From positions 418,157 through 482,156 of the IMG/VR virus record IMGVR_UViG_3300028558_000016: 64,000 nt of DNA. One strand, given 5' to 3'. The notes below the pieces were generated by a model. It saw only the letters and a program-made list of their open reading frames with translations, was not told where the DNA came from and made no database searches. Shown here in pieces: positions 81 to 35,515 of the stretch. Position 1 is the first letter of the stretch. Every line of letters starts with the position of its first letter. A program made the translations under genes and the position numbers.

Positions 81-170
81 GCCCGTGTAGCCGAGGAAGT
101 TTTCTAAACTTTTATCCGTAATTGGAGCTGCGTCTCACGACTAATGGGGGTTCGAATCCCTCCACGGGTA
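81..170 (+). tRNA. Atypical tRNA-like element, apparent Arg(UCU) anticodon, no D-arm, 33-nt variable region
   Basis: Acceptor gcccgtg/cacgggt; T arm ggggg-ttcgaat-ccctc; arm gaagt-tttctaa-acttt has the same loop as the canonical Arg(UCU) gene at 4389; only 8 nt between acceptor and anticodon arm. Confidence 0.55.
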
Positions 171-185
171 CTTAAAATTAAAGTT

Positions 186-1406: not shown

Positions 1407-2363
1407 ATGGCAACCAAAACATCTAAAGCCGCAACAGGAACCGTGAAAGCACGAACAGCAGGAAGAAAAGCAACGACATCAACAAAGACACCAATGAAAG
1501 CAGAAACTACATTGGAACCAAAAAAGGCCTCGAAGATTAAAATAAGTGGAAAAGAAGTTACATTGAACGGGTATTTTAAAATTGAATTGGGAACCTTTTC
1601 GATTTTAAAGCACAACATCCGAAACAACATAAGCACTCTTTTAATAGGTCCAACAGGACTTGGAAAAACAGATGTCGCAGTTAACATTGCGTCTGTGCTC
1701 GATGTTCCTATAACCATATTTGATATGGGAACGATGACTGACCCCATCATGGGACTTGTTGGAACTCACGTCATAGAGGTTAAAGATGGAAAAACATATT
1801 CTGAATTCAAGAAAAGCAGATTCTCTGACGTCATCCAAAAACCAGGAATAGTTTTATTGGATGAGGTCAATCGTGCTGCATCAGCCGCTAACAACTTATT
1901 ATTTCCTTGTTTAGATTTCAGAAGAGAGCTTCCAATGGAATATTCGTTTGGAGATACTAAGCCAATTCCAATTCATCCTAAATGTGTTTTCTTTGCAACG
2001 GCAAATATAGGATCTCAGTATACCGGAACTCACAAGCTTGACAGAGCATTAATCGATAGGTTCATGATTATTGCAGTTGATAGTCTCAACACTCAACAAA
2101 TTATGTCCACGTTAGAAGTGACTCATTCTAAATTAAGTGAGACTGACAGAAAAAAGATTGTTGACATTTACAACAAGATAAACAAAGAGCATGACGATTT
2201 CAAAATAGGTTTCAATTTGTCAATACGACATTTGAAAACTGTTGCGACACTTGTGCAAAACAAGTTCACGATATATGATGCGTATTATGCAATATGCAAA
2301 GGACTTGGTGGACCAGAAGGATTAAAAGCTATTGAATCGATCTTAAGCACCTCTAAAAAATGA
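1407..2363 (+). CDS. MoxR/CbbQ-NirQ-NorQ family AAA+ ATPase
   Basis: GPTGLGKT Walker A, LLDEVNR Walker B, ATAN sensor, LDRALIDRF. Confidence 0.9.
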   Translation: MATKTSKAATGTVKARTAGRKATTSTKTPMKAETTLEPKKASKIKISGKEVTLNGYFKIELGTFSILKHNIRNNISTLLIGPTGLGKTDVAVNIASVLDVPITIFDMGTMTDPIMGLVGTHVIEVKDGKTYSEFKKSRFSDVIQKPGIVLLDEVNRAASAANNLLFPCLDFRRELPMEYSFGDTKPIPIHPKCVFFATANIGSQYTGTHKLDRALIDRFMIIAVDSLNTQQIMSTLEVTHSKLSETDRKKIVDIYNKINKEHDDFKIGFNLSIRHLKTVATLVQNKFTIYDAYYAICKGLGGPEGLKAIESILSTSKK

Positions 2364-4099
2364 TAGGATTTGATATTACAGGAAAGAAATCAAAAAGCGT
2401 AACTAAATGGGAAGACTCATTGTTTGGAGGCTATTACAGAACTGTAATGGATTACCCGGACGTGAAAGTTCACAGCAACGTTGATTTTGATTTTGGAACC
2501 ATAGCGTATGGAAGTTACTTTTTAAAAGAGAAGATCTTGAAGATTTTCTTATCTAAGGTTAAAACACACGGTTACACTACAAAGCTTTTGGATAACTGTA
2601 CTGTCGAAAGAAAACGAGATGCATGGGGTGATGAAATCACTGAGGCCACCGTAGATAATAACAGCAAGCTCAGTACAATAAGAGCTGTGATTGCAAGAGA
2701 ACCAGAGTTTGCTCCTATGTTTTCCCATTATATGAAGTTTATAATGGACACCAGAATTTACTTTTACAAAAGCAATTCTAAAGCTCCAAGCAATGGGACT
2801 GGTTCTTCAGACGACGATTTTGAAGAATTTAAGGATGAAAACGAAAATGACGAATCATCCGGAAAATCAGAAGAAGAAAAATCTAAAAACGGAAACTCCG
2901 GTAAAGGCAAAGAGAAAGAGAAAGAAGAAGAGAAACCAGAAGAAACCAAGGATGAAAGCTCTGGTGATGGAGAAGGAGAAGAAAAAGAGGAGCCAGAAAA
3001 TTCCGAATCTGATGGTTCAAATTCTGAAGAAGAAAAGGAAGAAGAAAAAGGAGATGGAGAAGGAGAAGGAGAAGAAAAATCTCCAGAGGATAAGGCGTTG
3101 GAAGATAAATTAGAAAAAGAACTTGAGAAAAGGAAACAGGAAATAGAAGAACGAGAACAGAAGGCAAAACAAAAACCTGTCAAAAAATTAACTCAGGCTG
3201 AAATAAATCAAATCCAAGAATCTTTCAAAAAGGCCATTCAAAGTATAGTTGAAGAGTCCATTGTTCATAGCTACATTTCAGGATTTAAAAAACCTGTTAA
3301 AGTAATTTTTGAACGACCAAATGTTAGAGACACTGAGTTTAATTACGAAGACAAAAGAATAGCCGAGAATCTCGTTAAGATGCTCGACATTTCATTTGAC
3401 CCAGCGAAAGAAATAGTAAAGAACTTGCGTCTTGGCAAATTGGACATATCAAAGATTGCAGAGGTTCCAGCCGGAAATATTGCCATATACAAGCAGGATG
3501 TGGAAAATCAAACGACTAAACCATTTAGCATTGTAATATTATGTGATGAGTCAGGAAGCATGGGTTCTGGACATGAATACAAAGGACGTGGCGATAAATT
3601 GTATTCGCAATATAGAATAGTCAAACAATTGTACTTGGCATTTTCTGACATCATTCCACAGAATAAACTCTATGTGTATGGACATTCGGGATCAGAAGAA
3701 CCTGAGCTTTATGTTTATCAAGATTCTTATCGTCCAAATTTTACCAAGACGATTGATCACATGATCCACAACCATAATCACCATTCCAATTATGATGGAC
3801 CTGCAATAGAAGAAGTTTACAATCAGGTAAGAAATTCCACCGATGATAGAATAATTTTTATTTGTCTTTCTGATGGTCAACCTGCTGGAAATAATTATGG
3901 AGGTCACGATGATCAATTGAAAATGAAACAAATAATTGAAAAATGTAAGAGGGATGAATTCGTGACTGTTGGTGTTGGAATTCAATATTTCACCGTAAAG
4001 AATCTTTATCAATACAGCACGGTGGTAACTGATCTGGATGAAATGGCTAAGAAAGTGAGTCACATAGTCAATCACGTGGTCAAAAGTGAGTTTCAATAA
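2360..4099 (+). CDS. CobT-like vWA-domain protein with long acidic/charged linker; probable partner of the MoxR ATPase
   Basis: MIDAS-like ILCDESGSM and CLSDGQP; E/K/S/G-rich linker; ATGA overlap with the ATPase. Confidence 0.85.
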   Translation: MIGFDITGKKSKSVTKWEDSLFGGYYRTVMDYPDVKVHSNVDFDFGTIAYGSYFLKEKILKIFLSKVKTHGYTTKLLDNCTVERKRDAWGDEITEATVDNNSKLSTIRAVIAREPEFAPMFSHYMKFIMDTRIYFYKSNSKAPSNGTGSSDDDFEEFKDENENDESSGKSEEEKSKNGNSGKGKEKEKEEEKPEETKDESSGDGEGEEKEEPENSESDGSNSEEEKEEEKGDGEGEGEEKSPEDKALEDKLEKELEKRKQEIEEREQKAKQKPVKKLTQAEINQIQESFKKAIQSIVEESIVHSYISGFKKPVKVIFERPNVRDTEFNYEDKRIAENLVKMLDISFDPAKEIVKNLRLGKLDISKIAEVPAGNIAIYKQDVENQTTKPFSIVILCDESGSMGSGHEYKGRGDKLYSQYRIVKQLYLAFSDIIPQNKLYVYGHSGSEEPELYVYQDSYRPNFTKTIDHMIHNHNHHSNYDGPAIEEVYNQVRNSTDDRIIFICLSDGQPAGNNYGGHDDQLKMKQIIEKCKRDEFVTVGVGIQYFTVKNLYQYSTVVTDLDEMAKKVSHIVNHVVKSEFQ

Positions 4100-5419: not shown

Positions 5420-6112
5420 ATGTCAGCATTTAATTTAGCAGTTCCACCACATCCACTATCCTCGTTATTACTAAGAGCAATTAACTGGGCACAGCCTGAT
5501 GATCCTGAAAAGAAATATCCTATTCTTGGAAGAATGAGATATGTTTGGATCGATGAAGAGAAAAATATTAAGATTCTGGTTAGAGATGCTCCTGACTCAT
5601 GGTCAGAGGAAAAGGACGAAGTGATGAAACAAATCAAAGGTCATGAAACTTTTGTGAGTGTTGAAGTTTCTGAAAAAGATTCTACACATCTAATTGCCAC
5701 ATTCAAGCCTGTAATGGAAACTTCTTATGACAGAAGCATTCCAATGGATGAATTCCTCGATAACATCCACATATTTGATGAGGGTGCTCAATCTAAAGGT
5801 TGGCCGTCTCTTCTTGTTGGACCATGGGAATTATTTGATATTGCTATGGAGAAAATGAAAAATGGAGAGATGAGTCCCAAGATGGAGAGATTTGGTGAGC
5901 AATTAAAAGAAATGCTAAATGAGTCGGAAGCGGAAGACAAGCTTGAAGAGATGACAAAGGAAGCTGGTATTGATGGATTTGAAACTAAGAAAATAAAAGT
6001 GATGACAGTCGACAGAGTAGGAAATTTGAGTGATGAGACTGAAAGATTCATGAAAGAAAATGACAATGGAAAAACTCCTGGACAAGATACAAGCCAAGAT
6101 ACTCGTTCTTAA
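5420..6112 (+). CDS. Hypothetical acidic protein
   Basis: 230-aa ORF. Confidence 0.7.
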   Translation: MSAFNLAVPPHPLSSLLLRAINWAQPDDPEKKYPILGRMRYVWIDEEKNIKILVRDAPDSWSEEKDEVMKQIKGHETFVSVEVSEKDSTHLIATFKPVMETSYDRSIPMDEFLDNIHIFDEGAQSKGWPSLLVGPWELFDIAMEKMKNGEMSPKMERFGEQLKEMLNESEAEDKLEEMTKEAGIDGFETKKIKVMTVDRVGNLSDETERFMKENDNGKTPGQDTSQDTRS

Positions 6113-6221
6113 GCGAAAGAAACTGGCTAACATTGCAGTTTATTCAAAAGCTGTAAATGAAAGGTTTTATGGAAACATTACGGTGAAAACATTCACAATT
6201 GAATTAAAAATAAAGGAATGA
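6066..6221 (+). CDS. Small hypothetical protein (51 aa, not in ORF track)
   Basis: MEKLLDKIQAKILVLKRKK resembles the start of 6547..6840 (MEKFANKITELLVLKRKN); TGA overlaps the ATG at 6218. Confidence 0.55.
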   Translation: MEKLLDKIQAKILVLKRKKLANIAVYSKAVNERFYGNITVKTFTIELKIKE

Positions 6222-6547
6222 AAATAATTGAAAAGGAAAATAAAGAGGTAAACGTATTAAAGGATGTCATCTGCGACTGCTGTGGGAAAAGCTGTAACAT
6301 ATTCTTGGAAAAAGATCACCTTGTATCAAATTTCGAGTGCATGACACTCAAAGCCAATTGGGGATATGGCACTAAGAAGGATATGGAAAGATGGACTGCT
6401 CAAATATGCGAAAAATGCGTGGATGAAAAATTAGTTCCATTAATTAAGTTTAAAAAGGAAGATCTCGATTTCAATACCGTTATAGGAACTCAATCAGATT
6501 ATGGAAATAGATTAGAAGAAGGTCCATATCCAGGAATAGAAGACTAA
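6218..6547 (+). CDS. Hypothetical zinc-finger-like protein
   Basis: CDCCGKSC and CEKC cysteine clusters. Confidence 0.65.
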   Translation: MKIIEKENKEVNVLKDVICDCCGKSCNIFLEKDHLVSNFECMTLKANWGYGTKKDMERWTAQICEKCVDEKLVPLIKFKKEDLDFNTVIGTQSDYGNRLEEGPYPGIED

Positions 6548-6840
6548 TGGAAAAATTTGCAAATAAAATAACCGAATTGCTCGTTTTAAAGAGAAAAAAT
6601 AACAAAATCTTTAAAAACGTTTCAGGAATGGAATTTATTTGGGAAATGGCAGCAAATTTTGGAATCCATAATATACAAACTGTTTCTATAATAGCAGAAA
6701 AAGATTTTATGACGCCGATGGTAGTTATAAATGGATTGGTTGTCGGAAACATATCGCGTGAAATGCTTCAGGATATTAAATCTAAAGGTTCACCGCCGGC
6801 ATGTTGGAATGAGGAAATAATGGAAATAATGGTCCCTTAG
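6547..6840 (+). CDS. Hypothetical protein
   Basis: 97-aa coupled ORF; last codons overlap the tRNA. Confidence 0.6.
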   Translation: MEKFANKITELLVLKRKNNKIFKNVSGMEFIWEMAANFGIHNIQTVSIIAEKDFMTPMVVINGLVVGNISREMLQDIKSKGSPPACWNEEIMEIMVP

Positions 6841-6904
6841 CTCAGTTGGTTAGAGCGCCTGACTCATAATCAGAGGGTCGCAGGTTCAAATCCTGCAGGG
6901 ACCA
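6831..6904 (+). tRNA. tRNA with CAU anticodon, probably Ile2 (lysidine-type)
   Basis: ggtccct/agggacc acceptor, loop ctcataa; overall sequence resembles recalled bacterial tRNA-Ile2 (GGCCCCTTAGCTCAGTGGTTAGAGC...GACTCATAATC) more than initiator Met. Confidence 0.9.
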
Positions 6905-6905
6905 C

Positions 6906-7493
6906 ATGATAACAATTGGTATAGCTGGTGGAATGGGTTCTGGTAAGAGCCACATAAGCAAAGCATTTGCAAAGAATGGAATTCCTGTTTATGACTGTGA
7001 TAGCCAAACTAAGGATTTGTTAAACAGGAATGAAAGATTAAAATCCAACATGATTTCCGCGTTTGGAGAAGGATGTTATGTTAACGGAAAATACAGCAGA
7101 GATTACATAGTCGAATTGGCATCTAAAAATCCTAATGTGGTAGATGATACTGGAAAAATAATAGGTCCGTATCTTATTGAAGACTTCAAAACATTTAAAG
7201 AAATTAATGAGTCTTTCCATACTCCATTCATTGCTATAGAATCTGCGATACTTACTAAATCAAAAAAGCTTATGAATGAAATCAATAAGCTTCTTGTGGT
7301 GACTGCCCCATTTGAAATAAGAATGGATAGAATTAAAAAGAGAGATCCATTTAGAACTGACGATGAAATCAAATTGTTATTAAGCAAACAGCCTGAGATC
7401 AAATTGTGTGAAATAGATTTTCTTATAGATAATGATGGAACTAAAAATGTGGATGATGCCGTTGTGACAATTATTAATGGACTTATTCCTTAA
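6906..7493 (+). CDS. coaE: Dephospho-CoA kinase
   Basis: ITIGIAGGMGSGKS P-loop, IPVYDCD, AIESAIL, LLVVTAPFEIRMDRIKKRD. Confidence 0.85.
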   Translation: MITIGIAGGMGSGKSHISKAFAKNGIPVYDCDSQTKDLLNRNERLKSNMISAFGEGCYVNGKYSRDYIVELASKNPNVVDDTGKIIGPYLIEDFKTFKEINESFHTPFIAIESAILTKSKKLMNEINKLLVVTAPFEIRMDRIKKRDPFRTDDEIKLLLSKQPEIKLCEIDFLIDNDGTKNVDDAVVTIINGLIP

Positions 7494-8022
7494 CTATCTG
7501 AATGCACTTAGGATTGAAAACGATATAGCTATAAATGTCATCTCCTTTTAAAACTGTTGCTCCATCATATTTTATGTGAACCATGTTCTTGGCAAATAAA
7601 TCAGGTTTCCCTTCGTAAAATTCATCAGCTAAAATCTTATAACAGTTGTGAGCACTTCCACCATTCATGATGTGATCAATGGCTTTGAAATATGCTTCCC
7701 TTGCATTGTGATCAAACTTCTTTAATGTCTCATCCTTGTCTGGCGCATAAGACAACATGTAAACGACGTCATCTCTTTTTGGAGGTCCTTGGTCAGAAAC
7801 CATTCTTCCTAATTTAAGTTGTGCTTTGGTAACATAGGCTCCATGTTTTCTTGCATCATTTTCCTTGGACAAAAATAATATTCCAGACACCTCATCTTTG
7901 TGTTCAAACATGTTATCAAACGTGAATCCTTTTTTCACTTCAATTCCACCATGATAGCCCACGATCATTTCAGGTCCTACCTTGTCAGGAAATCTTTCTT
8001 TGAAACGTTGAATGTATCCCAT
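7483..8022 (-). CDS. Putative ADP-ribosyltransferase-fold protein (ART-PolyVal-like)
   Basis: VGYHGG, ILFLSKE..A..HG, and terminal YDGATVL..DIYSYIVFNPKCIQIV pattern. Confidence 0.55.
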   Translation of the reverse strand: MGYIQRFKERFPDKVGPEMIVGYHGGIEVKKGFTFDNMFEHKDEVSGILFLSKENDARKHGAYVTKAQLKLGRMVSDQGPPKRDDVVYMLSYAPDKDETLKKFDHNAREAYFKAIDHIMNGGSAHNCYKILADEFYEGKPDLFAKNMVHIKYDGATVLKGDDIYSYIVFNPKCIQIVKE

Positions 8023-8339
8023 TACTTTTTAAATAATTTCTTTAAATCATTGATGCAAATCCTCTTCCATACCATGGCGTGCAATTTCAATTTTTTGAAA
8101 AAAGACTTCTCGCCAACTTTCTTAATTCTCATCCTTCTTACAAGCATTCGCTTCTCATTCAAAAGAGCATTCGACATTTCATATTCTTCAAACTGTGTGC
8201 AGCTTTTAATCCATCTGTTCAGTAATAAAATCTTTTGATTGTCGTTTAGCTTTTTTCTTTCAGCAGAGTACCAGGCAAGAATGAATTTAACTTTGTTGCG
8301 GCTATTATTTCTATCGTTATTGTTGCTCACGTTATCCAT
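8022..8339 (-). CDS. Hypothetical basic protein
   Basis: 105-aa ORF preceded by an AATATATA box. Confidence 0.6.
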   Translation of the reverse strand: MDNVSNNNDRNNSRNKVKFILAWYSAERKKLNDNQKILLLNRWIKSCTQFEEYEMSNALLNEKRMLVRRMRIKKVGEKSFFKKLKLHAMVWKRICINDLKKLFKK

Positions 8340-8426
8340 CTATTCTATATATTCGTGATTTTACGAAGTATTTTTCTATTATGAATATCATTTATTGAAT
8401 GGAAATTTGCATGGAAATGTCATTTT

Positions 8427-8453
8427 GTAACTATTTGATAATCAATAAGTTAC
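8427..8453. promoter_or_regulatory. 27-bp imperfect palindrome (operator-like)
   Basis: GTAACT-at-TTGAT-A-ATCAA-ta-AGTTAC in a divergent intergenic region; related copy at 15298-15324. Confidence 0.55.
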
Positions 8454-11795: not shown

Positions 11796-13514
11796 ATGAG
11801 CACTACCAGAAGCGAACGCAATGAGAGTTTCAAGAAGGCTTTTGTAATAAAAGCCATTCCATTTCTCAAATCAATTTTTGCAAAAACTCAACTCGGTTAC
11901 AATAGCATTGACGTCAAAAGCACTTGTGACAAACATGAAATCCCGACAAATGCCGTTCCAACGATGGTTGACCTCGGCATTTTAAAGATGCAAGGAGAAA
12001 AACGATCCGCAATGTACCATTGGAAAGGTGGTCTTATTAGTGATGATATGGCGGCAAGAATTTACGAAAGAATTCAGATGAACAAGCAACACGCCAAGAT
12101 TAAAAAGAAAATGGAAGAACAACACGATAATAAGCTATCGAGCAAAAAGCTTGTTAAAGTGATTGGTTCTAAAAGACCGGTTGAATTTAAAAACGATCAC
12201 GAAGCTGCCGCCATATTAAGATCAATGGTTGAAGTGTATGCTGGAACCAAGAACAAAGGAATGAAAACGGCAGGAATGATCCTCGAGATTATTAGAAAGG
12301 AAGTTAATAATGATACGTTGGCCGATAGAATTTTGAAAGGGCTTGTTGATGGAAATTACATTACGGTCAATAAGAATTTAAACACGATCGACTTATACAC
12401 CTGGAACGAAGATGAACCAAACGAGGAACATGCTCTATTTATGAAGGACATGATCAAGGAAACAGTAGGAGACGACAGACCAAACAGAATATTTAATTTC
12501 CTGATGTACCTCTATAAGTTTAAGACCTTCACACACGCTAAATTACGTTCAGAGGTTGTCAAGTTTAATTTGACTTATAATGACCAATCAGTCATCACGG
12601 CAGATGTTCTTGAATTCAGAGGTTCAAAAATCGATAGAGAGTATAAATGGAAATTGAGCGAAGCTCCATCAATACAGCTCGCAGAAGTGCTTGACCGAAA
12701 AGTAAAAGCATACGGAGCCAAATACAAAAAGGATTACACTCCTAAAAAGGAATCTCCTAAAATGGATAAACACGTCAAGGAAGAAAAGCCTAAAACAGTT
12801 GGTACAACCAACTATGGAGCTTCAACATTAACCGTGTTAGAATATCTTAAAACACACGATCAGATGACAACTGATGAAGCGTGTGAGCTTCTTAAGCAAG
12901 ACAAGCATACAATTTCCAATATATTCTGGAGATTGTGTAAGGATAAATTGACATACCGAGTTAAAATGAAAACCTATGCAATGGTTGGAAATTCAGCTCC
13001 TGTTAAAAAAGAAGAACCGGTTGTTGTAGTTCAACACGTAAACAAAGAAGTAATGACACATGATAATGATTTCTTAAGCAGTTTAAAATCTGCTTTGGAC
13101 ACCATGAGAGAGAAAGAGATTAAGCTTACAAGAGAATTGAATGATGTTAAGGAAAAGATTAAAGAAGGTGAGGATCTTCTCGCCCTTAAGGAAAGAGAAC
13201 ATTCTTACATGGCTTCAATAGGAAAGTTTATAGGAAAGAAGAAAAATCCTGTCATTGACCAAATATCGACAGCTCTTATAAAGAGCCAAGATAATGGAAG
13301 AAAGAGACACGCGCATGACAAACAAACGATACTTGATACTCTTAACAGAAAAGAACAAGTAACGCTTGATGAATTCATTGAAATATTTTATCCTGGAAAA
13401 GGTTTAAACTGGAACAGCGATGAAGTTAAATCACTATCTGCAATGATATATTCTTTGAAAAAGGATGGAAAAATTGAATCTCCGGAAAAAGCAATATACA
13501 AGTTGAAAAAGTAA
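11796..13514 (+). CDS. Large basic protein with several putative winged-helix domains and a coiled coil
   Basis: VLEYLKTHDQMTTDEACELL..ISNIFWRLCKDKLTYRV and ILDTLNRKEQVTLDE..SAMIYSLKKDGKIESPEKAIYKL patterns. Confidence 0.6.
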   Translation: MSTTRSERNESFKKAFVIKAIPFLKSIFAKTQLGYNSIDVKSTCDKHEIPTNAVPTMVDLGILKMQGEKRSAMYHWKGGLISDDMAARIYERIQMNKQHAKIKKKMEEQHDNKLSSKKLVKVIGSKRPVEFKNDHEAAAILRSMVEVYAGTKNKGMKTAGMILEIIRKEVNNDTLADRILKGLVDGNYITVNKNLNTIDLYTWNEDEPNEEHALFMKDMIKETVGDDRPNRIFNFLMYLYKFKTFTHAKLRSEVVKFNLTYNDQSVITADVLEFRGSKIDREYKWKLSEAPSIQLAEVLDRKVKAYGAKYKKDYTPKKESPKMDKHVKEEKPKTVGTTNYGASTLTVLEYLKTHDQMTTDEACELLKQDKHTISNIFWRLCKDKLTYRVKMKTYAMVGNSAPVKKEEPVVVVQHVNKEVMTHDNDFLSSLKSALDTMREKEIKLTRELNDVKEKIKEGEDLLALKEREHSYMASIGKFIGKKKNPVIDQISTALIKSQDNGRKRHAHDKQTILDTLNRKEQVTLDEFIEIFYPGKGLNWNSDEVKSLSAMIYSLKKDGKIESPEKAIYKLKK

Positions 13515-14011
13515 TGTCCTATGACGTCATATTAAAGGAAGTAGGTCGTGCTAAATTAGGAGTGGTTAAGACGATCATGGATCTAACTGGTCTTGGATTA
13601 AAAGACTCAAAGGACTTGGCAGATGATGTGGACCCTCGTGTTGGAAAAGGAAGAGTGATAAGAAGAACAGATTCGCTCGAAGAAGCAGAGTCAGTAAAAA
13701 TACCGCTTGAAAATGCTGGAGCAACAGTTGAAATCATGAATAATACTACATTGGAAACAATACAATCAACATTAACGAGTTTCAAAGTTGTCACCAGCGG
13801 TTCAATATTGCAATACACATCTTCCACGCCAAGTTTAACTGGAATATTTGAACCTATCGCTGGTACTGGGATTGGCGGGAAATCATTTCGCATTAATTAC
13901 AGATCTAAAGATGGCGAAGATAAAACAGAAACAATAGAAGCTCCTACTTTAGAAATTGCTAAAACAAAGATACTTGATTTAGATTATGTTAACTACCACA
14001 TGGGAGGTTGA
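13514..14011 (+). CDS. Ribosomal protein bL12 (L7/L12) C-terminal domain fused to an unknown domain
   Basis: YDVILKEVGRAKLGVVKTIMDLTGLGLKDSKDLAD...EEAESVKIPLENAGATVEI. Confidence 0.8.
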   Translation: MSYDVILKEVGRAKLGVVKTIMDLTGLGLKDSKDLADDVDPRVGKGRVIRRTDSLEEAESVKIPLENAGATVEIMNNTTLETIQSTLTSFKVVTSGSILQYTSSTPSLTGIFEPIAGTGIGGKSFRINYRSKDGEDKTETIEAPTLEIAKTKILDLDYVNYHMGG

Positions 14012-16879: not shown

Positions 16880-16936
16880 TTCTCTTTGAGTAACATGGTT
16901 GGTTAACCTTGATTTACATACTCAAAGTTGAAGAGG

Positions 16937-16964
16937 AAGCCCCGAAAGGGGCTTTTTCTTTTTT
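16937..16964 (+). terminator. Rho-independent terminator
   Basis: aagcccc-GAAA-ggggctt followed by a T-rich tract. Confidence 0.85.
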
Positions 16965-17010
16965 AGAAACTTTTTGTTCTGACGGTGATATTATTTATGA
17001 TATTATTTAT

Positions 17011-17430
17011 ATGATCACTGCTTGCGGCATAATTGTTTTATACGAAAACAAAGTTCTTCTTTGTCACCCAACTAATTCTCGTTGGGAAGGAACTTATGGT
17101 GTTCCTAAAGGCAGAATAGAAGAAGGCGAAGAAACAATAGATTGTGCTGTAAGAGAATTTTTCGAAGAAACAGGCATCATAATAGATAAAGATAAATTGA
17201 ATGCCAAGACCATTATTGGTTATAAGAATTATCAGTCGGGCGAAGTCTACAAAGAACTTTGCTTATTCATACACAAAATCAATCACCTATCAGAGATAGG
17301 ACTCGATAATGAGGTTATCCCACAATCTCAATTACAGATAACAGAAATAGATTGGTGCGGATTCTTAACAAAAGATGAAGCAACACCAAAAATGTTTATC
17401 AAACAAATCCCAGTATTAAATTTTCTATAA
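17011..17430 (+). CDS. NUDIX hydrolase
   Basis: Nudix box PKGRIEEGEETIDCAVREFFEETG; start moved past the terminator. Confidence 0.9.
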   Translation: MITACGIIVLYENKVLLCHPTNSRWEGTYGVPKGRIEEGEETIDCAVREFFEETGIIIDKDKLNAKTIIGYKNYQSGEVYKELCLFIHKINHLSEIGLDNEVIPQSQLQITEIDWCGFLTKDEATPKMFIKQIPVLNFL

Positions 17431-18377: not shown

Positions 18378-18569
18378 ATGAAAACAGCAGAAAGTTTAAA
18401 AGCTCTTGTTGAGACCTTAGCGTCAGACGAGCAAAAATTCAGTGATGGAAACAATTCAGCAGGTTCTCGCATGAGAAAAACCTTGCAGGAGATTAAGAAA
18501 CTCGCACAAGCCGGCCGTGTGGATGTTCTTGCTAAACAAAAAGCAAACAAGCCTGCAAAAGCGAAGTAA
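18378..18569 (+). CDS. Hc1-family histone H1-like protein
   Basis: EQKFSDGNNSAGSRMRKTLQEIKKLAQAGR pattern. Confidence 0.75.
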   Translation: MKTAESLKALVETLASDEQKFSDGNNSAGSRMRKTLQEIKKLAQAGRVDVLAKQKANKPAKAK

Positions 18570-18600: not shown

Positions 18601-21117
18601 ATGATGACTCCAACTGAAAGAATCGGCGACCTCGTGTTGCCACAGGGAACTTACGTTCTCATTCAGGATGGATCAAACGGTCAGGTCGATGTCATTGTTG
18701 GTCCAAACAAGACTGCAATGCAGGAAACAGACAAACCTGTGATCTATAAACCTGAAACTGGTCGGTTTGAAAAAATCTCGAATGCGCTTGATGCGGTTCA
18801 GAGTTTTTCCACCGCAAACGAAGGACAGTACATCGTCCTTCATAATCCTTCCAAAGGAAACAAAGAACACCCTAACAAGGGAAGAAACACCGAGTCCACA
18901 GAATTAAGCATTGGAAATAAGATCAACATCACCGGTCCACAATCTTTCGCTTTATTTCCTGGACAACACGCGCAAATAATCGACGGACACCAACTCAAAT
19001 CAAACGAATACTTGGTTGTGAGAGTGTACAACGAGGAATCTGCAAAAGAAAACATCGCAAAAGCGATAGTTAAAGCGGCAGAAGGCGCTGAGAAAAAGAA
19101 AAGCGAAATCAAAAAGGAAGATCTTGTTAATGGAAAATTGTTCATTATCAAAGGTACTGAGATTTCGTTCTACATTCCTCCAACCGGTATTGAAGTAGTG
19201 AAAGAGCCAACAAGCAATTCTTACGTAAGGAAAGCTGTTACTCTTGAAAGACTTGAGTATTGCATTCTTCTTGAGCAAAATGGAAACAAACGTTACGTAA
19301 AAGGTCCTGATGTTGTGTTTCCTGAACCAACAGAAGAATTCATAGGACAAAACGGAAACAACAAGTTCAGAGCTCTTGAATTAAACGATAACATGGGTAT
19401 TTATATCAAGGTTATTGCGGACTACAAAGATGGAGACAATGAACACAAAGCAGGTGATGAAATGTTCATCACCGGAAAAGAACAAAAAATTTATTACCCA
19501 CAGCCTGAACATGCCATCATTAAATATGGCGATCAAATAATCCATTATGCAATTGCAATTCCTTCCGGAGAAGGTCGTTACATTCTTAACAAGAATAACG
19601 GAGCAGTTGAAATGGTTAAAGGTCCAAAAATGTTCTTGCCAGATCCACGTAAGGAAGTTGTTGTTAAGAGAATTCTTGATGACAAGACTGTGGAATTGTT
19701 CTATCCTGGAAATTCCGAAGCGGTGGAATACAACCGCGAACTTCAAGGAGTAATGGACACTCTTGAAGAAGATGAAAACTCACGCTCATTCTCAAATTCC
19801 GGAAGATACTTCTCTGCTGGAAATATGGGAGGAAGCAACAGAAGCCACGCACAATTAAATGAGTTCCTCGATCTTTCTGCACAAGGAAGCTTAGGATTAG
19901 AAGGTCCTTTAGGAAACTCAACACTTTCGAGATCTAAATCTGCTTCTTCGTCCACTATGAAGCGTTCAACCAAACACACCAAACCAAGAACCATCACCCT
20001 TGATACTAAATATGAGGGAGTTGTTTCCATGAACGTTTGGCCTGGTTACGCTATACAAGTGATTAAGAAGAATGGAGAACGCGAAGTAGTGTATGGCCCT
20101 AAGGTCGTATTGCTTGAATACGATGAGACGTTAGAAGTTCTTGAGCTTTCTACTGGAAAACCTAAGAGTGATGGAAACCTCATCAAAACAGTTTACCTGC
20201 AAACAAACAACAACATTGTTTCAGACATCATCGAGGTTGAGACCAAGGATTCTGTCACAGTGTCTATAAGATTGTCTTACAGAGTTAACTTCAAAGAAGA
20301 CGATGCGAAAAAATGGTTTACCGTATCCAACTACGTGAAGCTTCTAACACAACACCTGCGTTCAGTTGTAAGAAACAGCGTGAAGAAGAACACCATCGAA
20401 GAATTCAACAACGCGGCAACAGACATCATACGTAACATAATTCTCGGAGAACCAAAAGATGGTAAGCGCGAAGGAAAATACTTCGAGGAAAATGGAATGA
20501 ATGTGTATGACGTTGAAGTATTAAACATCAAAATCGGTGACGATAGAATCGCATCGATGTTAAAAGATGCTCAGTACAACACCGTTGAAAAGAATCTTCT
20601 CATCGCAAAAGAAAAGAAGAACCTGGAGTACGTTAAGGAAACAGAGGGATTCAAAAGAGAGAGGATCAAAGAGGAAGCAAGTACGGAAGAACAACGTATG
20701 GTAAGCTTACTCGAAAAAATACAGTCCGATGCAAAAGCTGAACTTGAGAAATTAAAGAACGAAGAAGCTGCACAAGCTTCTAAGAGCAAAATCGCCGATG
20801 ATGTTCTCGAAAGAGAAAGAAAATCGAAAGAAATGATCTTGAATTTCTTAAGCAAAGAAGCTGACATCGAGATTAAGAAAGTGAAAGAGAAGATGGAAGC
20901 AGTAACTCCAGGACTTATTGAAGCGATCACATCGCTTGGTACAGTTTCGTTATCAGAAATTCTTGCTAAGAACCTCAGAGCTCAAACGAGCGGATTGCAT
21001 GGAATATTCCCTGAAGGCGGAATGGATGGATTAATGCACACCATCAAAGGAACAGCTCTTGAAAAACAATTTACTGACTTGCTTAACAAGCATGCAAAAA
21101 CTCCAATAACCAACTAA
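18601..21117 (+). CDS. Major vault protein (MVP) homologue
   Basis: Vault-type beta repeats (AVTLERLEYCILL..RYVKGPDVVFPEPTEEF); VVYGPKVVLLEYDETLEVLELSTGKPK..SDIIEVETKDSVTVSIRLSYRVNF leading into an SPFH-like shoulder; C-terminal coiled coil. Confidence 0.85.
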   Translation: MMTPTERIGDLVLPQGTYVLIQDGSNGQVDVIVGPNKTAMQETDKPVIYKPETGRFEKISNALDAVQSFSTANEGQYIVLHNPSKGNKEHPNKGRNTESTELSIGNKINITGPQSFALFPGQHAQIIDGHQLKSNEYLVVRVYNEESAKENIAKAIVKAAEGAEKKKSEIKKEDLVNGKLFIIKGTEISFYIPPTGIEVVKEPTSNSYVRKAVTLERLEYCILLEQNGNKRYVKGPDVVFPEPTEEFIGQNGNNKFRALELNDNMGIYIKVIADYKDGDNEHKAGDEMFITGKEQKIYYPQPEHAIIKYGDQIIHYAIAIPSGEGRYILNKNNGAVEMVKGPKMFLPDPRKEVVVKRILDDKTVELFYPGNSEAVEYNRELQGVMDTLEEDENSRSFSNSGRYFSAGNMGGSNRSHAQLNEFLDLSAQGSLGLEGPLGNSTLSRSKSASSSTMKRSTKHTKPRTITLDTKYEGVVSMNVWPGYAIQVIKKNGEREVVYGPKVVLLEYDETLEVLELSTGKPKSDGNLIKTVYLQTNNNIVSDIIEVETKDSVTVSIRLSYRVNFKEDDAKKWFTVSNYVKLLTQHLRSVVRNSVKKNTIEEFNNAATDIIRNIILGEPKDGKREGKYFEENGMNVYDVEVLNIKIGDDRIASMLKDAQYNTVEKNLLIAKEKKNLEYVKETEGFKRERIKEEASTEEQRMVSLLEKIQSDAKAELEKLKNEEAAQASKSKIADDVLERERKSKEMILNFLSKEADIEIKKVKEKMEAVTPGLIEAITSLGTVSLSEILAKNLRAQTSGLHGIFPEGGMDGLMHTIKGTALEKQFTDLLNKHAKTPITN

Positions 21118-21177
21118 ATTGGAAAGATAGTAGAGTAGTGTAGTAGTTCATGTGTTAATGTTTATTTGGTTAGCTTG

Positions 21178-21207
21178 AAGGCCATTCGCGAGAATGGCTT
21201 TCTCGTT
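21178..21207 (+). terminator. Hairpin, probable terminator after the MVP gene
   Basis: aaggccattc-GCGA-gaatggcttt with a weak U tract. Confidence 0.55.
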
Positions 21208-21319: not shown

Positions 21320-21616
21320 ATGAAAGTATACCTCCTAATAAACGAAGAAGGAAAATATAAGATCGGTTTCACAGAACGAGAAACAAAGAAGCGAATAAAA
21401 GAATTACAGACAGGATCACCATCAGAAATGAGAGTCGTCCAAGAATATGAAAGCGACAATGCAAGGAAGATAGAAACAATCCTACACAGGTTCCTAAGGT
21501 CTAAACGAATAAGTGGAGAGTGGTTTGAATTGACGAATGAAGAGGTTGCAGACTTTAAGAACAGATGCGCCAAGATCGATTACAATATAAAATTTCTCGA
21601 AGAAAATAAAATATAA
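21320..21616 (+). CDS. T5orf172/MUG113-type GIY-YIG nuclease-family protein
   Basis: VYLLINEEGKYKIGFT..KRIKELQTGSP..ETILHRFL...SGEWFEL. Confidence 0.85.
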   Translation: MKVYLLINEEGKYKIGFTERETKKRIKELQTGSPSEMRVVQEYESDNARKIETILHRFLRSKRISGEWFELTNEEVADFKNRCAKIDYNIKFLEENKI

Positions 21617-29430: not shown

Positions 29431-29897
29431 ATTTCTTGGTTGTTGTATAATATAGTGCTTGAATGTAAGTTCAATGTTATCTCTTTAGTTCTTGCAGCCT
29501 GCAGAAAATTATTTTCTTCCAGGTGTGTGAAAAAAAGAAGATCATCAAAGTCCACGCTCATGTTGCACTCCTTATATATCAAGGTGCCTATGATTTTACC
29601 CTTCTTACCATAATCATTATCCAAAATGGAAATTATGACGTCAGACTTCTTTTGGCTGTTTTTAAGCTTCAAAAGAGAATCGACAGGAACTATCTTCCTT
29701 GTGTCATTTTGGTAATAGAGTCCAAATGTTATCTCACGAGATGAAACAGACTTCACACAATCGTGCAAGATCTGTTTATCCTCGTCAGTTAAATCTACTG
29801 AAGTGAATTCAACATCAAAGTATGTCGAATAAATCGGTTCCAGCTTCTTCACATTTTCCTCTTGCTTCAATAATTGATTGCTCGAATTCGTCTTCAT
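29427..29897 (-). CDS. Hypothetical protein (start uncertain)
   Basis: Open frame that overlaps the end of the sigma gene. Confidence 0.55.
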   Translation of the reverse strand: MKTNSSNQLLKQEENVKKLEPIYSTYFDVEFTSVDLTDEDKQILHDCVKSVSSREITFGLYYQNDTRKIVPVDSLLKLKNSQKKSDVIISILDNDYGKKGKIIGTLIYKECNMSVDFDDLLFFTHLEENNFLQAARTKEITLNLHSSTILYNNQEI

Positions 29898-30843
29898 CGT
29901 TATGTTGGGTTTGTTTGTTTTTATTTCGTGACTGAACGAGCTTGAAGTATTCTGGATTGTTCTCAATGATCTGAGTTCTCGCCCTCTTTATTCTCGTCTT
30001 AACGCTGTTAATGTTTATGTTGTGCTTCTCAGCAATTGCTTTATACTTCATTCCATTTAATTCTCTGTCGATCATGATCTCCTTGTAAAATCTTGAAAGG
30101 CCATTTATCTCCTTTAAAACTTTTTCATAGACAACCTGATGAACATCTTCAGACTCATTGAGATCCCAATCAGGATCCACTTGCACCAATTCTTCGTCAG
30201 CACCACATCTTATCAAGTTGTGCTCGCTGTATTGCATTGCTTCCGAATGATTGCTTCCAGCATTTAATGAAACCAGCATCTTATTTTTTCTGATGTGTTG
30301 CATCGCCTCGTTGTGTACTATTCTATAAGCCCAAGTCGAAAAGTTCCAGTACTTGTTGTATTGATCTATCTTGCTCCAGATCTTTGTGAATGCAATAGAC
30401 ACAACATCTTCTGCAGAAGCTTCGTCTTTCAATATGTTCATTGCATGGAAAATCATTCCAGGTTTTAATCTTGCGTAAAGATTATTGAAATCTCTTTCTG
30501 ATCTGCTCTTGTAAAATTCAAGTGCTATCTTCTGTAATCCTTTTGCCTTGATGATGTCATCCTCGGTTACTATTAATTCCTTTGGAATTTCTACTTCTAT
30601 GTCTGCAACTTTTTCTGGTAAAGCAACAACTGCAGGAAGCTTTTGACAGTCGATGTAATTATCGAACTTCAATTCACCTTTCTTAAGTTTACCTTTGTAC
30701 CATGAAATATTTCCAGGTCCAGTCCTCGATCCCATTATTCTCATCACCTCATCCGCGATCTGCTTGTTCGTCCACTCCTTGTTGTAGAAGATCAAGTGCA
30801 TTGCACAATGTGCTATGCTTGGAAATTTTTGTTCTGTTGACAT
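29815..30843 (-). CDS. ECF-type sigma-70 family RNA polymerase sigma factor with N-terminal extension
   Basis: Region 2 AEDVVSIAFTKIW..FSTWAYRIVHNEAMQHIRK; region 4 LNGMKYKAIAEKHNININSVKTRIKRAR. Confidence 0.9.
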   Translation of the reverse strand: MSTEQKFPSIAHCAMHLIFYNKEWTNKQIADEVMRIMGSRTGPGNISWYKGKLKKGELKFDNYIDCQKLPAVVALPEKVADIEVEIPKELIVTEDDIIKAKGLQKIALEFYKSRSERDFNNLYARLKPGMIFHAMNILKDEASAEDVVSIAFTKIWSKIDQYNKYWNFSTWAYRIVHNEAMQHIRKNKMLVSLNAGSNHSEAMQYSEHNLIRCGADEELVQVDPDWDLNESEDVHQVVYEKVLKEINGLSRFYKEIMIDRELNGMKYKAIAEKHNININSVKTRIKRARTQIIENNPEYFKLVQSRNKNKQTQHNDEDEFEQSIIEARGKCEEAGTDLFDIL

Positions 30844-32155: not shown

Positions 32156-35100
32156 TTATGCAACAGTTTGCACTTTTAACGTTCCTTGTAAAATCATTTT
32201 TATGTCCTTCAATGCGCCAGCCATACTCGCCATGTTTGTAGTTAAATCAGTCATCATCTGAGTTAACTGAGCATTATTTTGCTGAGCACCTGGTTTTGTT
32301 TGTGTAGCAACCTCAGCTGGTTTAACAGCAGTTTTTCCTGGTTCAGAATTTATTGCAGTTGTAGGAGTTGGCTCTGTAACAGGCGTTGCAGGTTTAGCAT
32401 TACCTTTTTCATAAATGAAATTGATGAGTGCTGCACCCTTATCCGTCAATGTACTGAACGCATTTGGATCAACCTTAGCAAAAGTAACTAATGATTGAAT
32501 CAACAAGTCAGAAGTCTTAACGGTCTTTCCGTCCATCTTCTTAAATGTTCCTGCAAACTTGTCCATGCTCTTAGCAATTCTCTCAAAAGAGTCTGCGAGC
32601 TTAGTTAATGGATCAGCAGTTGCAGCCATTCTCTCGAGATAACCAACGGCTTTATCAAGAGACGTCATGTCCATGTTAGGTTTTATTCCTGCGATGGTTG
32701 CCATTATTTTGGAAAGGCTTGATGACAATCCGCTTCCAGTTTTTTCTGTTATCTTCTTCTCTTCAACCTTAGCAAGAAGGTCAATGAAGTTTTTCAAAGG
32801 ATCCACGAGGGTTCCGAATATGTTTGTTACAGCCTCAAGTTTTTCTTTATTAGGCTCAATTATTTTCGCAGCATCCAAGAATGCTTGCGGAATGACCATC
32901 AACGTTAATTTAATTCTGTTTGCTACCTGAGAGAAATCTTTAACTGCAGCGACAGATGTAACCATCGCAGCAATTCCATTTAAGTCTGCAGAAATTCCTT
33001 GTATTGCAGCTTTACCTTTTTCAATGTCGCTGTCTCTGAACCAACCTGAATTTGCTGCTTCACCAGAACCAACATCAGCTAAAGCTCCAGTAACAGCCTT
33101 GATCATGTTGATGATGTTAGTTCTAACAGAACCACCTTCAGCCAACATGGAAGGATCAATTACAGTTACTCCGGTCTGTTTACCGTTTTTGTCGTAAATA
33201 GGGAAAGTTAAGTTTGCAGCCTTCTGAACGAAATCAGCAAGACCAACAAGATCACCACCAATTCCTCTAATTACTTCTGCACCTTTTTCTCCGTCAGATT
33301 TACTGAACCATCCTGTCTCACCTTGAGATTTTCCAACCTCAGTTAAAGTTCCTGCAATGGCAGTGATCAACATCTTCATGTTGGTCGTAACCTGCTGGAA
33401 TTGCTTGTCGCCTATTCCGAAATATCCTGTGATCTTTCCGTTCTTATCGTAAATAGGGAATTTCAAGTCTGCCATCTTGGCAACACCTTCAGCCATTCCC
33501 TTAATAATATTTCCTACACCTGAGACTGCATCAATACCATCCTCAACATCATCCCAATCAACTGCAGTTCCTTTTCCTCTGCTAACATCAACAAACGCAT
33601 TCAACACGCTCGTCAATACTGAATTGACAGATTTGCTTACGCCTTCTATTCCTCCAGGAATTCCTCTTTGGATTATGTTTGCAAATCCTGCTAAACCACC
33701 TGCGATGCTCATCAATGCAAAACCTGCCATCAACCAAGCTGGAACTGAAGCGTAGAATCCTAATAATTTTATTGGACCCATCACCATGCCATCGACTACT
33801 GAAGAAAGAGCTGCGTCTATATTTGTTCTTCCTTTATAAGCACTCATCGTTGATTCTTCAAACAACATAGCAGATTTCTTGTAAGCAAAATTGAATGCAA
33901 GAAGTCCACCAGTCAATGTGATCAACGCAACAGATGCTACTATCAATCCAGCGGCACCCAATAACATGAATGCACTCTTGATTGGATTTATTGTGAATGC
34001 GCTCACGATTCCTGTAATTACAGAATTCATCATGAGCTCCTCAGGATCGTTTGGATCTTGTTTTAAAATTCCGTCCTTAGCTTTATTGAACGCAAAATTT
34101 ATTGCGAGCAAACCGACAGACAACGTGATCATTGCTATTGAAGCAACGAGCAACGCAGCGGCTCCGGCAAGCATGAATACCGATTTGATTGGATTTATTG
34201 CAAACGCATCTGCAATTCCTCCGATCATTACTTCCATGTTAGATTCATCTGGATATTGCGTGCTTGGTGCGAGAAGTCCTGTCATCGCTTTTTGATAAAC
34301 CGCGTTCAACGTCAAAATTCCTAATGACAACGTGATCATTGCTATTGAAGCAACGAGCAACGCAGCGGCACCCAACAATATTGGAATTGCCATCAATCCT
34401 GCAAGGAACATGGCTCCACCAACCGCAACAACTGCTGCGCCAGCCATGAGAAAATCTTCTGAAGTAATCTTAAATAATTTGAATGAACCAATTCCAAGAG
34501 CAAGCGCAATCAATGCTAATCCTCCAAATGCGAGAGCCAATGCACCTTCTTCTATTTCGCTTGCAAACATTCCTACAAGACCCATTGCCAATCCTGTTAC
34601 TGCAACAGCGGCTCCGGCAATCAGGACAGATTTTATATCGATCTTTAATAATTGGAATGAAGCAATACCGAACGCAAGGGATATTAAAGCAAGTCCCATC
34701 CAAGCGGCTGCCTTTGCACCTTGCTCAATTGGATCTGCGAATTGTCCAAGGAAATAAAACGCGAGACTGAACACAGTCAATCCAGCAATAACTATCAAAG
34801 CTCCTTCGGCGTAGGCCTTCCAGGAACCTCCAGCTAATTCTTTTGTTGCGAATAAAGCGATGGAAAATCCTACGATTCCCAACGACATCCATCCTATGGA
34901 TTTTGCACCTTCTGTTATGTTCTCAGCCACCTCACCTATCTTTGAGAAGGTGTAAGCGTAAAGAGCCAACATTGGAATGATTATAAGAGATCCTATCGCG
35001 CCAATGACATAAAGAGGAGTTGCTAAAAATAAAACCAATCCAAGCTGTGCGATTCCTAAAGCCATCACGCTTAATCCTTCGCCACCTTCTTTTATTTTCT

Positions 35101-35515
35101 TCGTGTCAATGCTTTGAAATTGATCTGAGATTTTCTTTAAAAATTGTATTAAATTATCGACGGCATCCTCTGGGATTTTTGAATAAAATTTCAAAGCAAC
35201 GTTTAAAGATTTTAAACCTTCCGTCAATGCCTTGAATCCTTCTTTTAGTTTTGGACCTGCCTCAGCCAAATCAGAAAGACTGCTTGTTAAATTCTTAAAT
35301 TTATTTGCTATTCCTCCCAATGCGGCTTCCTCAGCTTTTCCACCAGATTTACCGCTTCCGCCTTTACCAATAGAGTCGAGCCTGTCAGCAAGTCTGTCCA
35401 ACGTGGCAGCTTGTTGTTCTGCAAGGGACTCCAACTTGTTAACTACGTGGTCCATCGATCTTGCCGAATCGACCAACATAGATGCGGCCATTAATAATGC
35501 TTTTTCTGATGCCAT
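32156..35515 (-). CDS. Tape measure protein
   Basis: 1119-aa A/G/hydrophobic helical protein with internal repeats, downstream of the baseplate hub genes and a late-promoter box. Confidence 0.75.
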   Translation of the reverse strand: MASEKALLMAASMLVDSARSMDHVVNKLESLAEQQAATLDRLADRLDSIGKGGSGKSGGKAEEAALGGIANKFKNLTSSLSDLAEAGPKLKEGFKALTEGLKSLNVALKFYSKIPEDAVDNLIQFLKKISDQFQSIDTKKIKEGGEGLSVMALGIAQLGLVLFLATPLYVIGAIGSLIIIPMLALYAYTFSKIGEVAENITEGAKSIGWMSLGIVGFSIALFATKELAGGSWKAYAEGALIVIAGLTVFSLAFYFLGQFADPIEQGAKAAAWMGLALISLAFGIASFQLLKIDIKSVLIAGAAVAVTGLAMGLVGMFASEIEEGALALAFGGLALIALALGIGSFKLFKITSEDFLMAGAAVVAVGGAMFLAGLMAIPILLGAAALLVASIAMITLSLGILTLNAVYQKAMTGLLAPSTQYPDESNMEVMIGGIADAFAINPIKSVFMLAGAAALLVASIAMITLSVGLLAINFAFNKAKDGILKQDPNDPEELMMNSVITGIVSAFTINPIKSAFMLLGAAGLIVASVALITLTGGLLAFNFAYKKSAMLFEESTMSAYKGRTNIDAALSSVVDGMVMGPIKLLGFYASVPAWLMAGFALMSIAGGLAGFANIIQRGIPGGIEGVSKSVNSVLTSVLNAFVDVSRGKGTAVDWDDVEDGIDAVSGVGNIIKGMAEGVAKMADLKFPIYDKNGKITGYFGIGDKQFQQVTTNMKMLITAIAGTLTEVGKSQGETGWFSKSDGEKGAEVIRGIGGDLVGLADFVQKAANLTFPIYDKNGKQTGVTVIDPSMLAEGGSVRTNIINMIKAVTGALADVGSGEAANSGWFRDSDIEKGKAAIQGISADLNGIAAMVTSVAAVKDFSQVANRIKLTLMVIPQAFLDAAKIIEPNKEKLEAVTNIFGTLVDPLKNFIDLLAKVEEKKITEKTGSGLSSSLSKIMATIAGIKPNMDMTSLDKAVGYLERMAATADPLTKLADSFERIAKSMDKFAGTFKKMDGKTVKTSDLLIQSLVTFAKVDPNAFSTLTDKGAALINFIYEKGNAKPATPVTEPTPTTAINSEPGKTAVKPAEVATQTKPGAQQNNAQLTQMMTDLTTNMASMAGALKDIKMILQGTLKVQTVA
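34119..34369. repeat. Exact 44-nt direct repeat inside the tape measure gene
   Basis: gacaacgtgatcattgctattgaagcaacgagcaacgcagcggc at 34119-34162 and 34326-34369 (period 207 nt = 69 codons). Confidence 0.9.

Follow-up and report, generated by a model that had tools for sequence, protein, structure and literature searches.

This study addressed whether a huge phage encodes a major vault protein (MVP) homolog, MVP being the protein that self-assembles into the eukaryotic vault, and what such a protein would do in an infected bacterium. The question is raised by a gene at 18601..21117 on the plus strand of a 64,000-nucleotide stretch (the window) of the IMG/VR record UViG_3300028558_000016, the full Joint Genome Institute (JGI) contig of which measures 482,156 bp. 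The open reading frame (ORF) has no internal stop and encodes 838 residues plus a stop codon, and its assignment draws on the ORF itself, Pfam, sequence and profile comparisons with the Protein Data Bank (PDB), and Foldseek. An earlier note on this DNA had described the product as a phage-encoded MVP homolog. Our results revealed that the protein is an MVP homolog along its whole length, and we consider it reasonably probable that it is a soluble vault-type subunit that associates laterally to build a capped shell inside infected cells, as a container or a sponge.

In a Pfam search judged against the curated cut-offs, MVP_shoulder (PF11978) matched residues 537-647 over model positions 2-118 of 118 with 96.8 bits (cut-off 25; E = 1.1e-27), and Vault_3 matched residues 482-534, in the last repeat, with 42.8 bits (cut-off 28.8; E = 5.9e-11). 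Band_7 (PF01145) also exceeded its cut-off (29.1 against 23.6 bits; E = 1.2e-6). The generic Vault repeat (PF01505) remained below threshold (16.8 against 27 bits, residues 261-300), and Vault_4 scored 13.7 bits; the hidden Markov model search proposed in the earlier note supported the shoulder and the last repeat above threshold, and the generic repeat family only below it. Among PDB sequences, phmmer matched the protein solely to major vault proteins (rat and human), with a whole-sequence E = 2e-20; query residues 470-798 aligned to rat MVP 453-801, and a weaker second stretch aligned residues 225-367 to rat 294-427. With a profile of 81 diverse relatives, the match to PDB MVP reached E = 4.8e-42. 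The similarity to MVP is far beyond chance. The alignment with human MVP that had earlier been drawn by eye was reproduced by phmmer (VVYGPK...STGKPK and ...IEVETKD...YRVNF against VVFGPE...SAGRPK and ...ITIETADH...YNWHF). No PHROG family matched the protein, and PADLOC yielded no family for it at E <= 0.01.

An AlphaFold2 monomer model was built on the alignment of the 81 diverse relatives, and its mean predicted local distance difference test score (pLDDT) was 82, exceeding 90 across the beta array and the shoulder. The N-terminal array (residues 10-358, 18628..19674, plus strand as for all parts of the gene) is all-beta and comprises about seven vault-type units, which Foldseek also matched. 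It is followed by a helical pair (residues 359-392, 19675..19776; model helices 361-367 and 372-391), the length of which hardly varies among relatives (34 residues in 54 of 81 sequences), and by a disordered loop rich in S, G, and N (residues 393-456, 19777..19968; pLDDT below 50 at 394-456). The last beta repeat (residues 468-535, model 476-530, 20002..20205), identified by its Vault_3 match, is the equivalent of rat R9 and aligned to rat residues 453-519. The SPFH-like shoulder (residues 536-647, 20206..20541) is an alpha/beta unit at 538-645 of the model and was recognized by MVP_shoulder, Band_7, and Foldseek. The cap helix (residues 648-766, 20542..20898) is an E/K-rich, unbroken helix of 119 residues, assigned as helix throughout by DSSP and aligned to the rat cap helix. 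The C-terminal cap-ring-like region (residues 767-838, 20899..21114) consists of short helices modeled with lower confidence and contains a conserved motif, A-[IV]-x-P-x-L-[IV]-x-A-L; the profile alignment extends through this A-x-x-P...L motif to rat residue 816 (rat 803-816 for the region). The layout given in the earlier note (beta repeats, an S/G-rich insert, a shoulder, and a coiled coil) was thus recovered in the model.

Among the beta repeats, self-comparison by hhalign revealed two alternating repeat flavors, one pairing residues 8-60 with 312-358 (E = 5.7e-7) and with 468-535 (E = 1.7e-4) and the other pairing 173-206 with 255-311 (E = 3.9e-5). Secondary structure and hhalign together indicate approximately eight repeat units rather than the nine (R1-R9) of the eukaryotic protein. 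No hydrophobic segment was found: the highest 19-residue Kyte-Doolittle mean was 1.31 (residues 771-789), and the N-terminus is polar. The protein is therefore predicted to be soluble, and the membrane-associated, membrane-remodeling SPFH cage suggested in the earlier note is not borne out.

When the model was compared with the PDB by Foldseek, full-length vault chains ranked first (E = 9e-33 to 6e-26, 830-945 columns), followed by crystal structures of murine MVP R1-R7 (E = 4e-14 to 1.3e-12; TM 0.50-0.56). The SPFH proteins flotillin, QmcA, HflK/C, stomatin, and prohibitin came third (E = 7e-7 to about 1e-4). Because the vault chains (about 1e-32) and the R1-R7 structures (4e-14) outrank flotillin, HflK/C, and stomatin (about 1e-6), the resemblance goes beyond a generic SPFH domain.

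The phage protein and eukaryotic MVP (4V60, 4HL8, 7PKZ, 9BW5, 9MXV) share the order of beta repeats, shoulder, long cap helix, and cap-ring motif, the S-x-G-[KR]-P-K loop, and a disordered loop before the last repeat. They differ in that identity in the structural alignments is only approximately 17% and in that the phage protein has about eight repeats instead of nine, the 69-residue alignment offset (query 225 = rat 294) corresponding to approximately one repeat. The cap helix of the phage protein is also shorter than that of the rat, which we take to be approximately 155 residues, in agreement with the profile-aligned range. The disordered loop lies where R8 of rat MVP has its own disordered loop. 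Across the family, this loop measures 30-90 residues (median 50) with a column identity of 0.18, and it reaches 67 residues in the window protein compared with 31-39 in the nearest clades; the S/G-rich insert is thus a lineage-specific expansion of a variable loop present family-wide. The possibility that the insert is a conserved nucleic-acid-binding tail was considered and rejected, as its length and charge follow no pattern (median charge 0; 31 sequences positive and 34 negative).

In contrast to the disordered loop, which varies freely in length, the cap helix varies in discrete steps. Among 158 distinct relatives, it measures 137 residues in 109 sequences, 119 in 22, 126 in 6, 130 in 8, 141 in 3, 148 in 3, 152 in 2, and 155 in 3; two outliers are shorter, with 92 and 94 residues. 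The short 119-residue form, which characterizes the clade of the window protein, is found in 12 viral rows, in all six contigs fetched through the close relatives of the window protein, and in three genome rows. The differences from the mode of 137 are -18, -11, -7, +4, +11, +15, and +18, and differences of the form 7a+11b account for 97.5% of the sequences, against 19% expected under uniform lengths. Six of the seven indel classes keep the helical phase within 40 degrees, with a rough binomial chance of approximately 0.0025 calculated post hoc. Because a helix packed on its neighbors in a bundle or barrel requires indels that keep the register, these heptad- and hendecad-preserving changes argue for lateral packing of the helix in what would be an oligomeric shell.

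The most conserved motif of the family, S-x-G-x-P-K, lies in the last repeat (S517-T-G-K-P-K522, 20149-20166, a feature called from family conservation) and aligns with S-A-G-R-P-K of the eukaryotic protein. Among the 81 relatives, S517 and K522 are invariant, P521 is present in 80, and G519 in 79; N538 is kept in 80, and the position of K520 is K or R in 52. The S517-K522 loop is the counterpart of the human "keyhole loop" (R504/K506), which sits between adjacent MVP shoulders and belongs to a pocket in which nicotinamide adenine dinucleotide (NAD+), ADP-ribose, and adenosine diphosphate (ADP) are bound. Most residues of the human pocket are changed in the window protein: R507, H509, R511, W545, P565, and K573 are replaced by S, N, I, V, S, and Q.

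The phage origin of the gene, claimed in the earlier note, is established by its surroundings. The window carries a tail sheath gene (PHROG, 1.5e-118), a large terminase gene (TerL, 2.9e-52), a baseplate hub-like protein gene, and two tRNAs, and it belongs to a 482-kb huge phage of the myovirus type from rhizosphere metagenomes, that is, a soil phage. The nearest TerL sequences (31-36% identity) are those of metagenomic huge phages of 462-642 kb and of Lak megaphages. Further genes of the huge-phage kind in the window encode an arginyl-tRNA synthetase (ArgRS)-like fragment, an L7/L12-like protein, CoaE, a NUDIX hydrolase, a MoxR-VWA pair, and a sigma factor. The MVP locus is identical across two independent assemblies, and Logan contigs from four rhizosphere runs carry it with no differences and no joints. 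The MVP gene is the last of a plus-strand block of nonstructural genes, and the virion module lies on the opposite strand, 30 kb away. A hairpin followed by a U-rich tract (21177..21202, plus strand) begins 60 nucleotides past the MVP stop, with an 11-bp stem and a minimum free energy of -21.1 kcal/mol for the 61-nucleotide fold (z = -3.3 against shuffles). It is probably the terminator of the transcription unit, a call we keep tentative because the consensus scan did not list it; that scan for promoters and terminators returned counts no higher than chance.

Relatives of the protein are numerous. A word-indexed search returned more than 6,100, the best 120 of which are all at least 51% identical, several of them on contigs of 165-531 kb; an exhaustive search yielded 1,171 clusters at 50% identity, of which 578 reached E <= 1e-30. 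Pattern scans confirmed at least 284 relatives in IMG/VR viral contigs and at least 486 in the species genomes of GTDB, among them those of the isolates Enhygromyxa salina, Nannocystis radixulma, and Thermoflexibacter ruber. Among the best 80 IMG/VR relatives, 17 are on contigs of at least 200 kb and a further 18 on those of 100-200 kb, and the nearest ESM Atlas clusters are 43-69% Uroviricota or else Myxococcota. In 50,697 GenBank phage records, the gene was found in three metagenomic huge-phage records only, namely LR756500 (462 kb), LR756501, and LR756503 (both 735,411 bp), and no cultured phage carrying it was found among them. From this distribution, we conclude that the gene is an accessory gene frequent in very large uncultivated phages. 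Apart from the phages, an 802-residue protein from Harvfovirus, a giant virus, that carries the label "prohibitin domain" (BFVD A0A3G5A4K1) was matched to the model along its entire length (E = 1.2e-13, 910 columns); judging from this model comparison, some giant eukaryotic viruses may encode MVP-like proteins.

A FastTree phylogeny of 166 sequences placed the window protein inside the prokaryotic and phage MVP family, the "chemotrophic bacteria" clade of Sokolskyi 2019 and Santos 2023. One branch with a Shimodaira-Hasegawa-like support of 94 separates 68 of the 80 cellular-labeled sequences (including Myxococcota, Cytophagales, Riflebacteria, Sericytochromatia, and Bacillota) from a remainder of many deep viral lineages in which 12 genome-labeled rows are scattered. 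These 12 rows were considered as possible mis-binned phage, and this was rejected for several of them, the neighbors being cellular-type genes: SecA in a Saccharibacteria row, FtsH and a PilB-type ATPase in a Magasanikiibacteria row, an Na/Ca exchanger and an O-antigen ligase in a gammaproteobacterial row, and MFS, UbiA, and SDR genes in a Cytophagales row. Virus and cell labels change at least eight times on the tree, which indicates that phages and cells exchanged the gene repeatedly. The tree is midpoint-rooted and contains no eukaryotic sequences as an outgroup, and the exchange is therefore stated without a direction. Viral and bacterial proteins lie at roughly the same distance from eukaryotic MVP (76 bits for the window protein and 42 for a second viral protein; 57 and 60 for two bacterial ones). 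Median pairwise identity is 44% among viral and 62% among cellular sequences, and the corresponding tree lengths are 31.6 and 14.65.

The window protein belongs to a clade of 32 rows with 100% support, which comprises itself, 23 IMG/VR contigs, the six contigs fetched through close relatives, and two genome rows; this clade is almost wholly viral and has long internal branches. Its nearest cellular-labeled relative, at 57% identity, is on a Cytophagales contig (460-5778 and 5914-8379) from a metagenome-assembled genome (MAG), where the neighboring genes encode an MFS transporter, UbiA, an SDR protein, and a cytidylyltransferase. This kinship hints at a Bacteroidota host and at exchange with Cytophagales. 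On a separate 20-kb Methanosarcinales MAG contig, an MVP relative (6001-8427) that groups with viral rows adjoins a nicotinate phosphoribosyltransferase gene, which raises the possibility of a Borg-like or viral element from methane-oxidizing archaea.

Among the known relatives, bacterial MVP homologs of chemotrophic gliding or predatory bacteria (Myxococcota, Cytophagales) go back in the literature to 2013 or earlier (Daly 2013, PMC3762200; Sokolskyi 2019, bioRxiv 10.1101/872010). The window protein resembles such members as Enhygromyxa, Nannocystis, and Thermoflexibacter in its full-length identity of 40-57% (42-57% to 80 genome loci over residues 1-830), in the Band-7 signal of the shoulder, and in its distance from eukaryotic MVP; it differs in being phage-encoded, in having a cap helix 18 residues below the mode, and in its expanded disordered loop. 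Phage MVPs were described by Santos et al. (2023, bioRxiv 10.1101/2023.11.10.566534) in ctOa11 and ct2Ri15, two Caudoviricetes from the gut. They are likewise of the bacterial type, with approximately 810 residues, approximately 23% identity to human MVP, a predicted MVP fold, and no TEP1 or vPARP found there. By description, however, ctOa11 and ct2Ri15 are human-gut phages near phages of Bacillota hosts, whereas the window comes from a rhizosphere huge phage with a Lak-related TerL. Predicted vault proteins are also reported to co-occur with histone genes in Borg elements (PMC12660748), giant extrachromosomal, viral-like elements in which this co-occurrence parallels the pair of an Hc1 gene and the MVP gene in the window; Borgs are archaeal, their histones are of another type, and the pairing in the window is confined to one small clade.

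That pair consists of the MVP gene and, 31 nucleotides upstream, a gene for a 63-residue chlamydial histone H1-like protein (Hc1; 18378..18569, plus strand; Pfam Hc1, 1.3e-14), and the two are possibly co-transcribed. Hc1 was rejected as a general MVP partner, as jackhmmer found an Hc1-like ORF only in an 82%-identical relative and none near the other 160 or more loci. The nonstructural neighbors in the window are NUDIX, Hc1, CoaE, and the L7/L12-like protein; those in relatives include NAD synthase, dUTPase, and DNA polymerase B. Eukaryotic vault components other than MVP appear to have no counterpart in the window: Rfam returned only tRNAs over the 64 kb, with no vault RNA or Y RNA, and PARP and TROVE domains (the counterparts of PARP4 and TEP1) were not found among approximately 40 scanned ORFs.

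Several other features of the window were recorded. Directly after the MVP gene lies a small T5orf172/MUG113 (GIY-YIG-like) gene (21320-21616, plus strand; PADLOC candidate PDC-S57, 2.2e-11), which is kept in the 82%-identical relative, and the NUDIX hydrolase gene (16909-17430, plus strand; PADLOC candidate PDC-S07, 1.3e-8) precedes the MVP gene by 1.2 kb. The L7/L12 C-terminal domain (5.4e-15) is part of a 165-residue protein (13514-14011, plus strand), which is translation-related and of the huge-phage type. At 1407-4099 (plus strand), a MoxR-type AAA+ ATPase gene overlaps by four nucleotides the gene for a 579-residue protein with a C-terminal VWA domain, and VWA proteins are also found 5-7 kb from the MVP gene in two related loci. 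Weak tRNA-like Rfam matches at 1-56 (cut by the window edge) and 81-170 were not called by ARAGORN, and the latter overlaps the start of an ORF (144-1349, plus strand) containing an arginyl-tRNA synthetase catalytic-domain fragment. On the minus strand, a sigma-70-type factor gene with regions 2 and 4 (29815-30843) and, in the structural block, a 1,119-residue ORF (32156-35515) that matched neither Pfam nor PHROG were identified.

These findings lead us to favor the capped shell. By homology with eukaryotic MVP, the subunits would self-assemble next to one another in the bacterial cytoplasm during infection and form a closed, capped shell, the beta-repeat array forming the wall, the shoulder and the long cap helix providing lateral contacts, and the C-terminal motif closing the cap. 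The rat vault, for comparison, is a closed barrel of two halves with 78 copies of MVP and D39 symmetry. The shell would then serve to sequester a host or phage component. Several points weigh against this proposal. The structural model is that of a monomer; with a helix of 119 residues and approximately one repeat fewer than rat MVP, the geometry could differ. The indel classes of the cap helix are few and partly inherited, and their test is post hoc. When the ORFs lying up to 6-8 kb from 166 MVP loci were compared all against all by BLAST and clustered, no conserved partner or cargo gene emerged: the largest real neighbor cluster reached at most 10 of the 166, and the bigger clusters were shadow ORFs inside the MVP gene itself. 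RNA runs were looked for and none were listed. Occurrence in related huge phages is patchy, with the gene present in LR756500 and LR756501 and absent from Lak, LR745206, LR756502, and LR756504. The eukaryotic vault itself, discovered in 1986, is without an agreed function.

The alternative that the protein is a membrane-associated SPFH scaffold of the HflK/C, flotillin, or stomatin type, organizing or remodeling the host membrane during infection, is the least probable of those considered. SPFH cages (HflK/C, QmcA, flotillin, stomatin, prohibitin, and erlin) do build a closed oligomeric dome from a shoulder fold and a long helix, they rank next among the structural matches (1e-6 to 1e-4), the shoulder has its Band_7 match, and Band-7 proteins are encoded by other phages and by giant viruses. 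These cages are, however, membrane-anchored, whereas the window protein has neither an N-terminal membrane anchor nor any transmembrane segment; the shoulder scores 96.8 bits with MVP_shoulder against 29.1 with Band_7, membrane SPFH proteins possess nothing comparable to the 350-residue vault repeat array, and full-length vault chains match approximately 25 orders of magnitude better. A role in the virion, whether as a protein inside the head, as one of an inner body, or as a scaffold for the very large capsid, would agree with the association with 100-500 kb contigs if the function is tied to capsid size, and the adjacent DNA-condensing Hc1 protein in the window clade could hint at DNA packaging. 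We nevertheless regard this role as quite improbable, since the gene lies among nonstructural genes away from the sheath, terminase, and baseplate block, matches no PHROG structural family, is absent from closely related huge phages, and has close full-length relatives in chromosomal contexts beside SecA, FtsH, or an MFS transporter with no capsid. In the favored reading, the gene is instead accessory and non-virion, and huge phages have repeatedly exchanged it with bacteria.

Its purpose may still be a bacterial one. The gene could be a host-derived accessory performing a bacterial task, such as the amino-acid or nucleotide storage that has been proposed for bacterial MVPs, with no phage-specific mechanism, or it could be a near-neutral passenger; the interleaving of viral and cellular lineages with about eight label changes and the Cytophagales relative with its cellular neighbors agree with this, and an auxiliary-metabolic-gene role has been proposed for phage MVPs by Santos et al. 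(bioRxiv 10.1101/2023.11.10.566534). We consider it unlikely, as the clade of the window protein is almost wholly viral with long internal branches and viral sequences are more diverse than cellular ones; a passenger fits poorly with a gene that is intact and highly conserved, and maintenance in many deep viral lineages implies selection in phages. This explanation concerns purpose and is compatible with assembly of a cage. The same shell might instead act as a nucleotide sponge, taking up NAD+, ADP-ribose, or ADP in the shoulder pocket and so buffering the phage against NAD-centered host defense. Human MVP binds these ligands between adjacent shoulders through the keyhole loop, the first half of this loop is the most conserved motif of the phage family, and NUDIX, NAD synthase, or nicotinate phosphoribosyltransferase genes lie near some MVP loci. 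Because the keyhole loop is conserved in its first half only, and with most pocket residues changed, an NAD-synthase-like neighbor cluster in only 5 of 166 loci, and no PADLOC match, we rate nucleotide binding as very improbable.

The implied novelty of a phage MVP is overstated, since phage MVPs were reported in 2023 (bioRxiv 10.1101/2023.11.10.566534) and JGI already names many relatives "major vault protein." The literature searched contained no report of how large the family is among huge phages, the way in which viral and cellular lineages interleave, the lack of a conserved partner, or the quantized cap-helix lengths. The value of the finding is limited for now, as the basic observation is already in a preprint and no cultured MVP-carrying phage is available. 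Phage MVPs nonetheless constitute a large family extending well beyond two gut phages, with at least 284 viral contigs, many of 100-500 kb. A bolder reading, which we think distinctly unlikely, is that vault shells are a widespread and long-standing organelle of huge phages, perhaps sequestering nucleotides or host factors, that gene flow between phages and cells spread the vault, and that the eukaryotic vault may have its origin among phage MVPs. If the cages do form, huge phages would gain a second protein compartment besides the phage nucleus, and bacterial and phage vaults would be a source of new self-assembling nanocontainers. The phage-bacterium setting could make the function of the vault testable with simple genetics.

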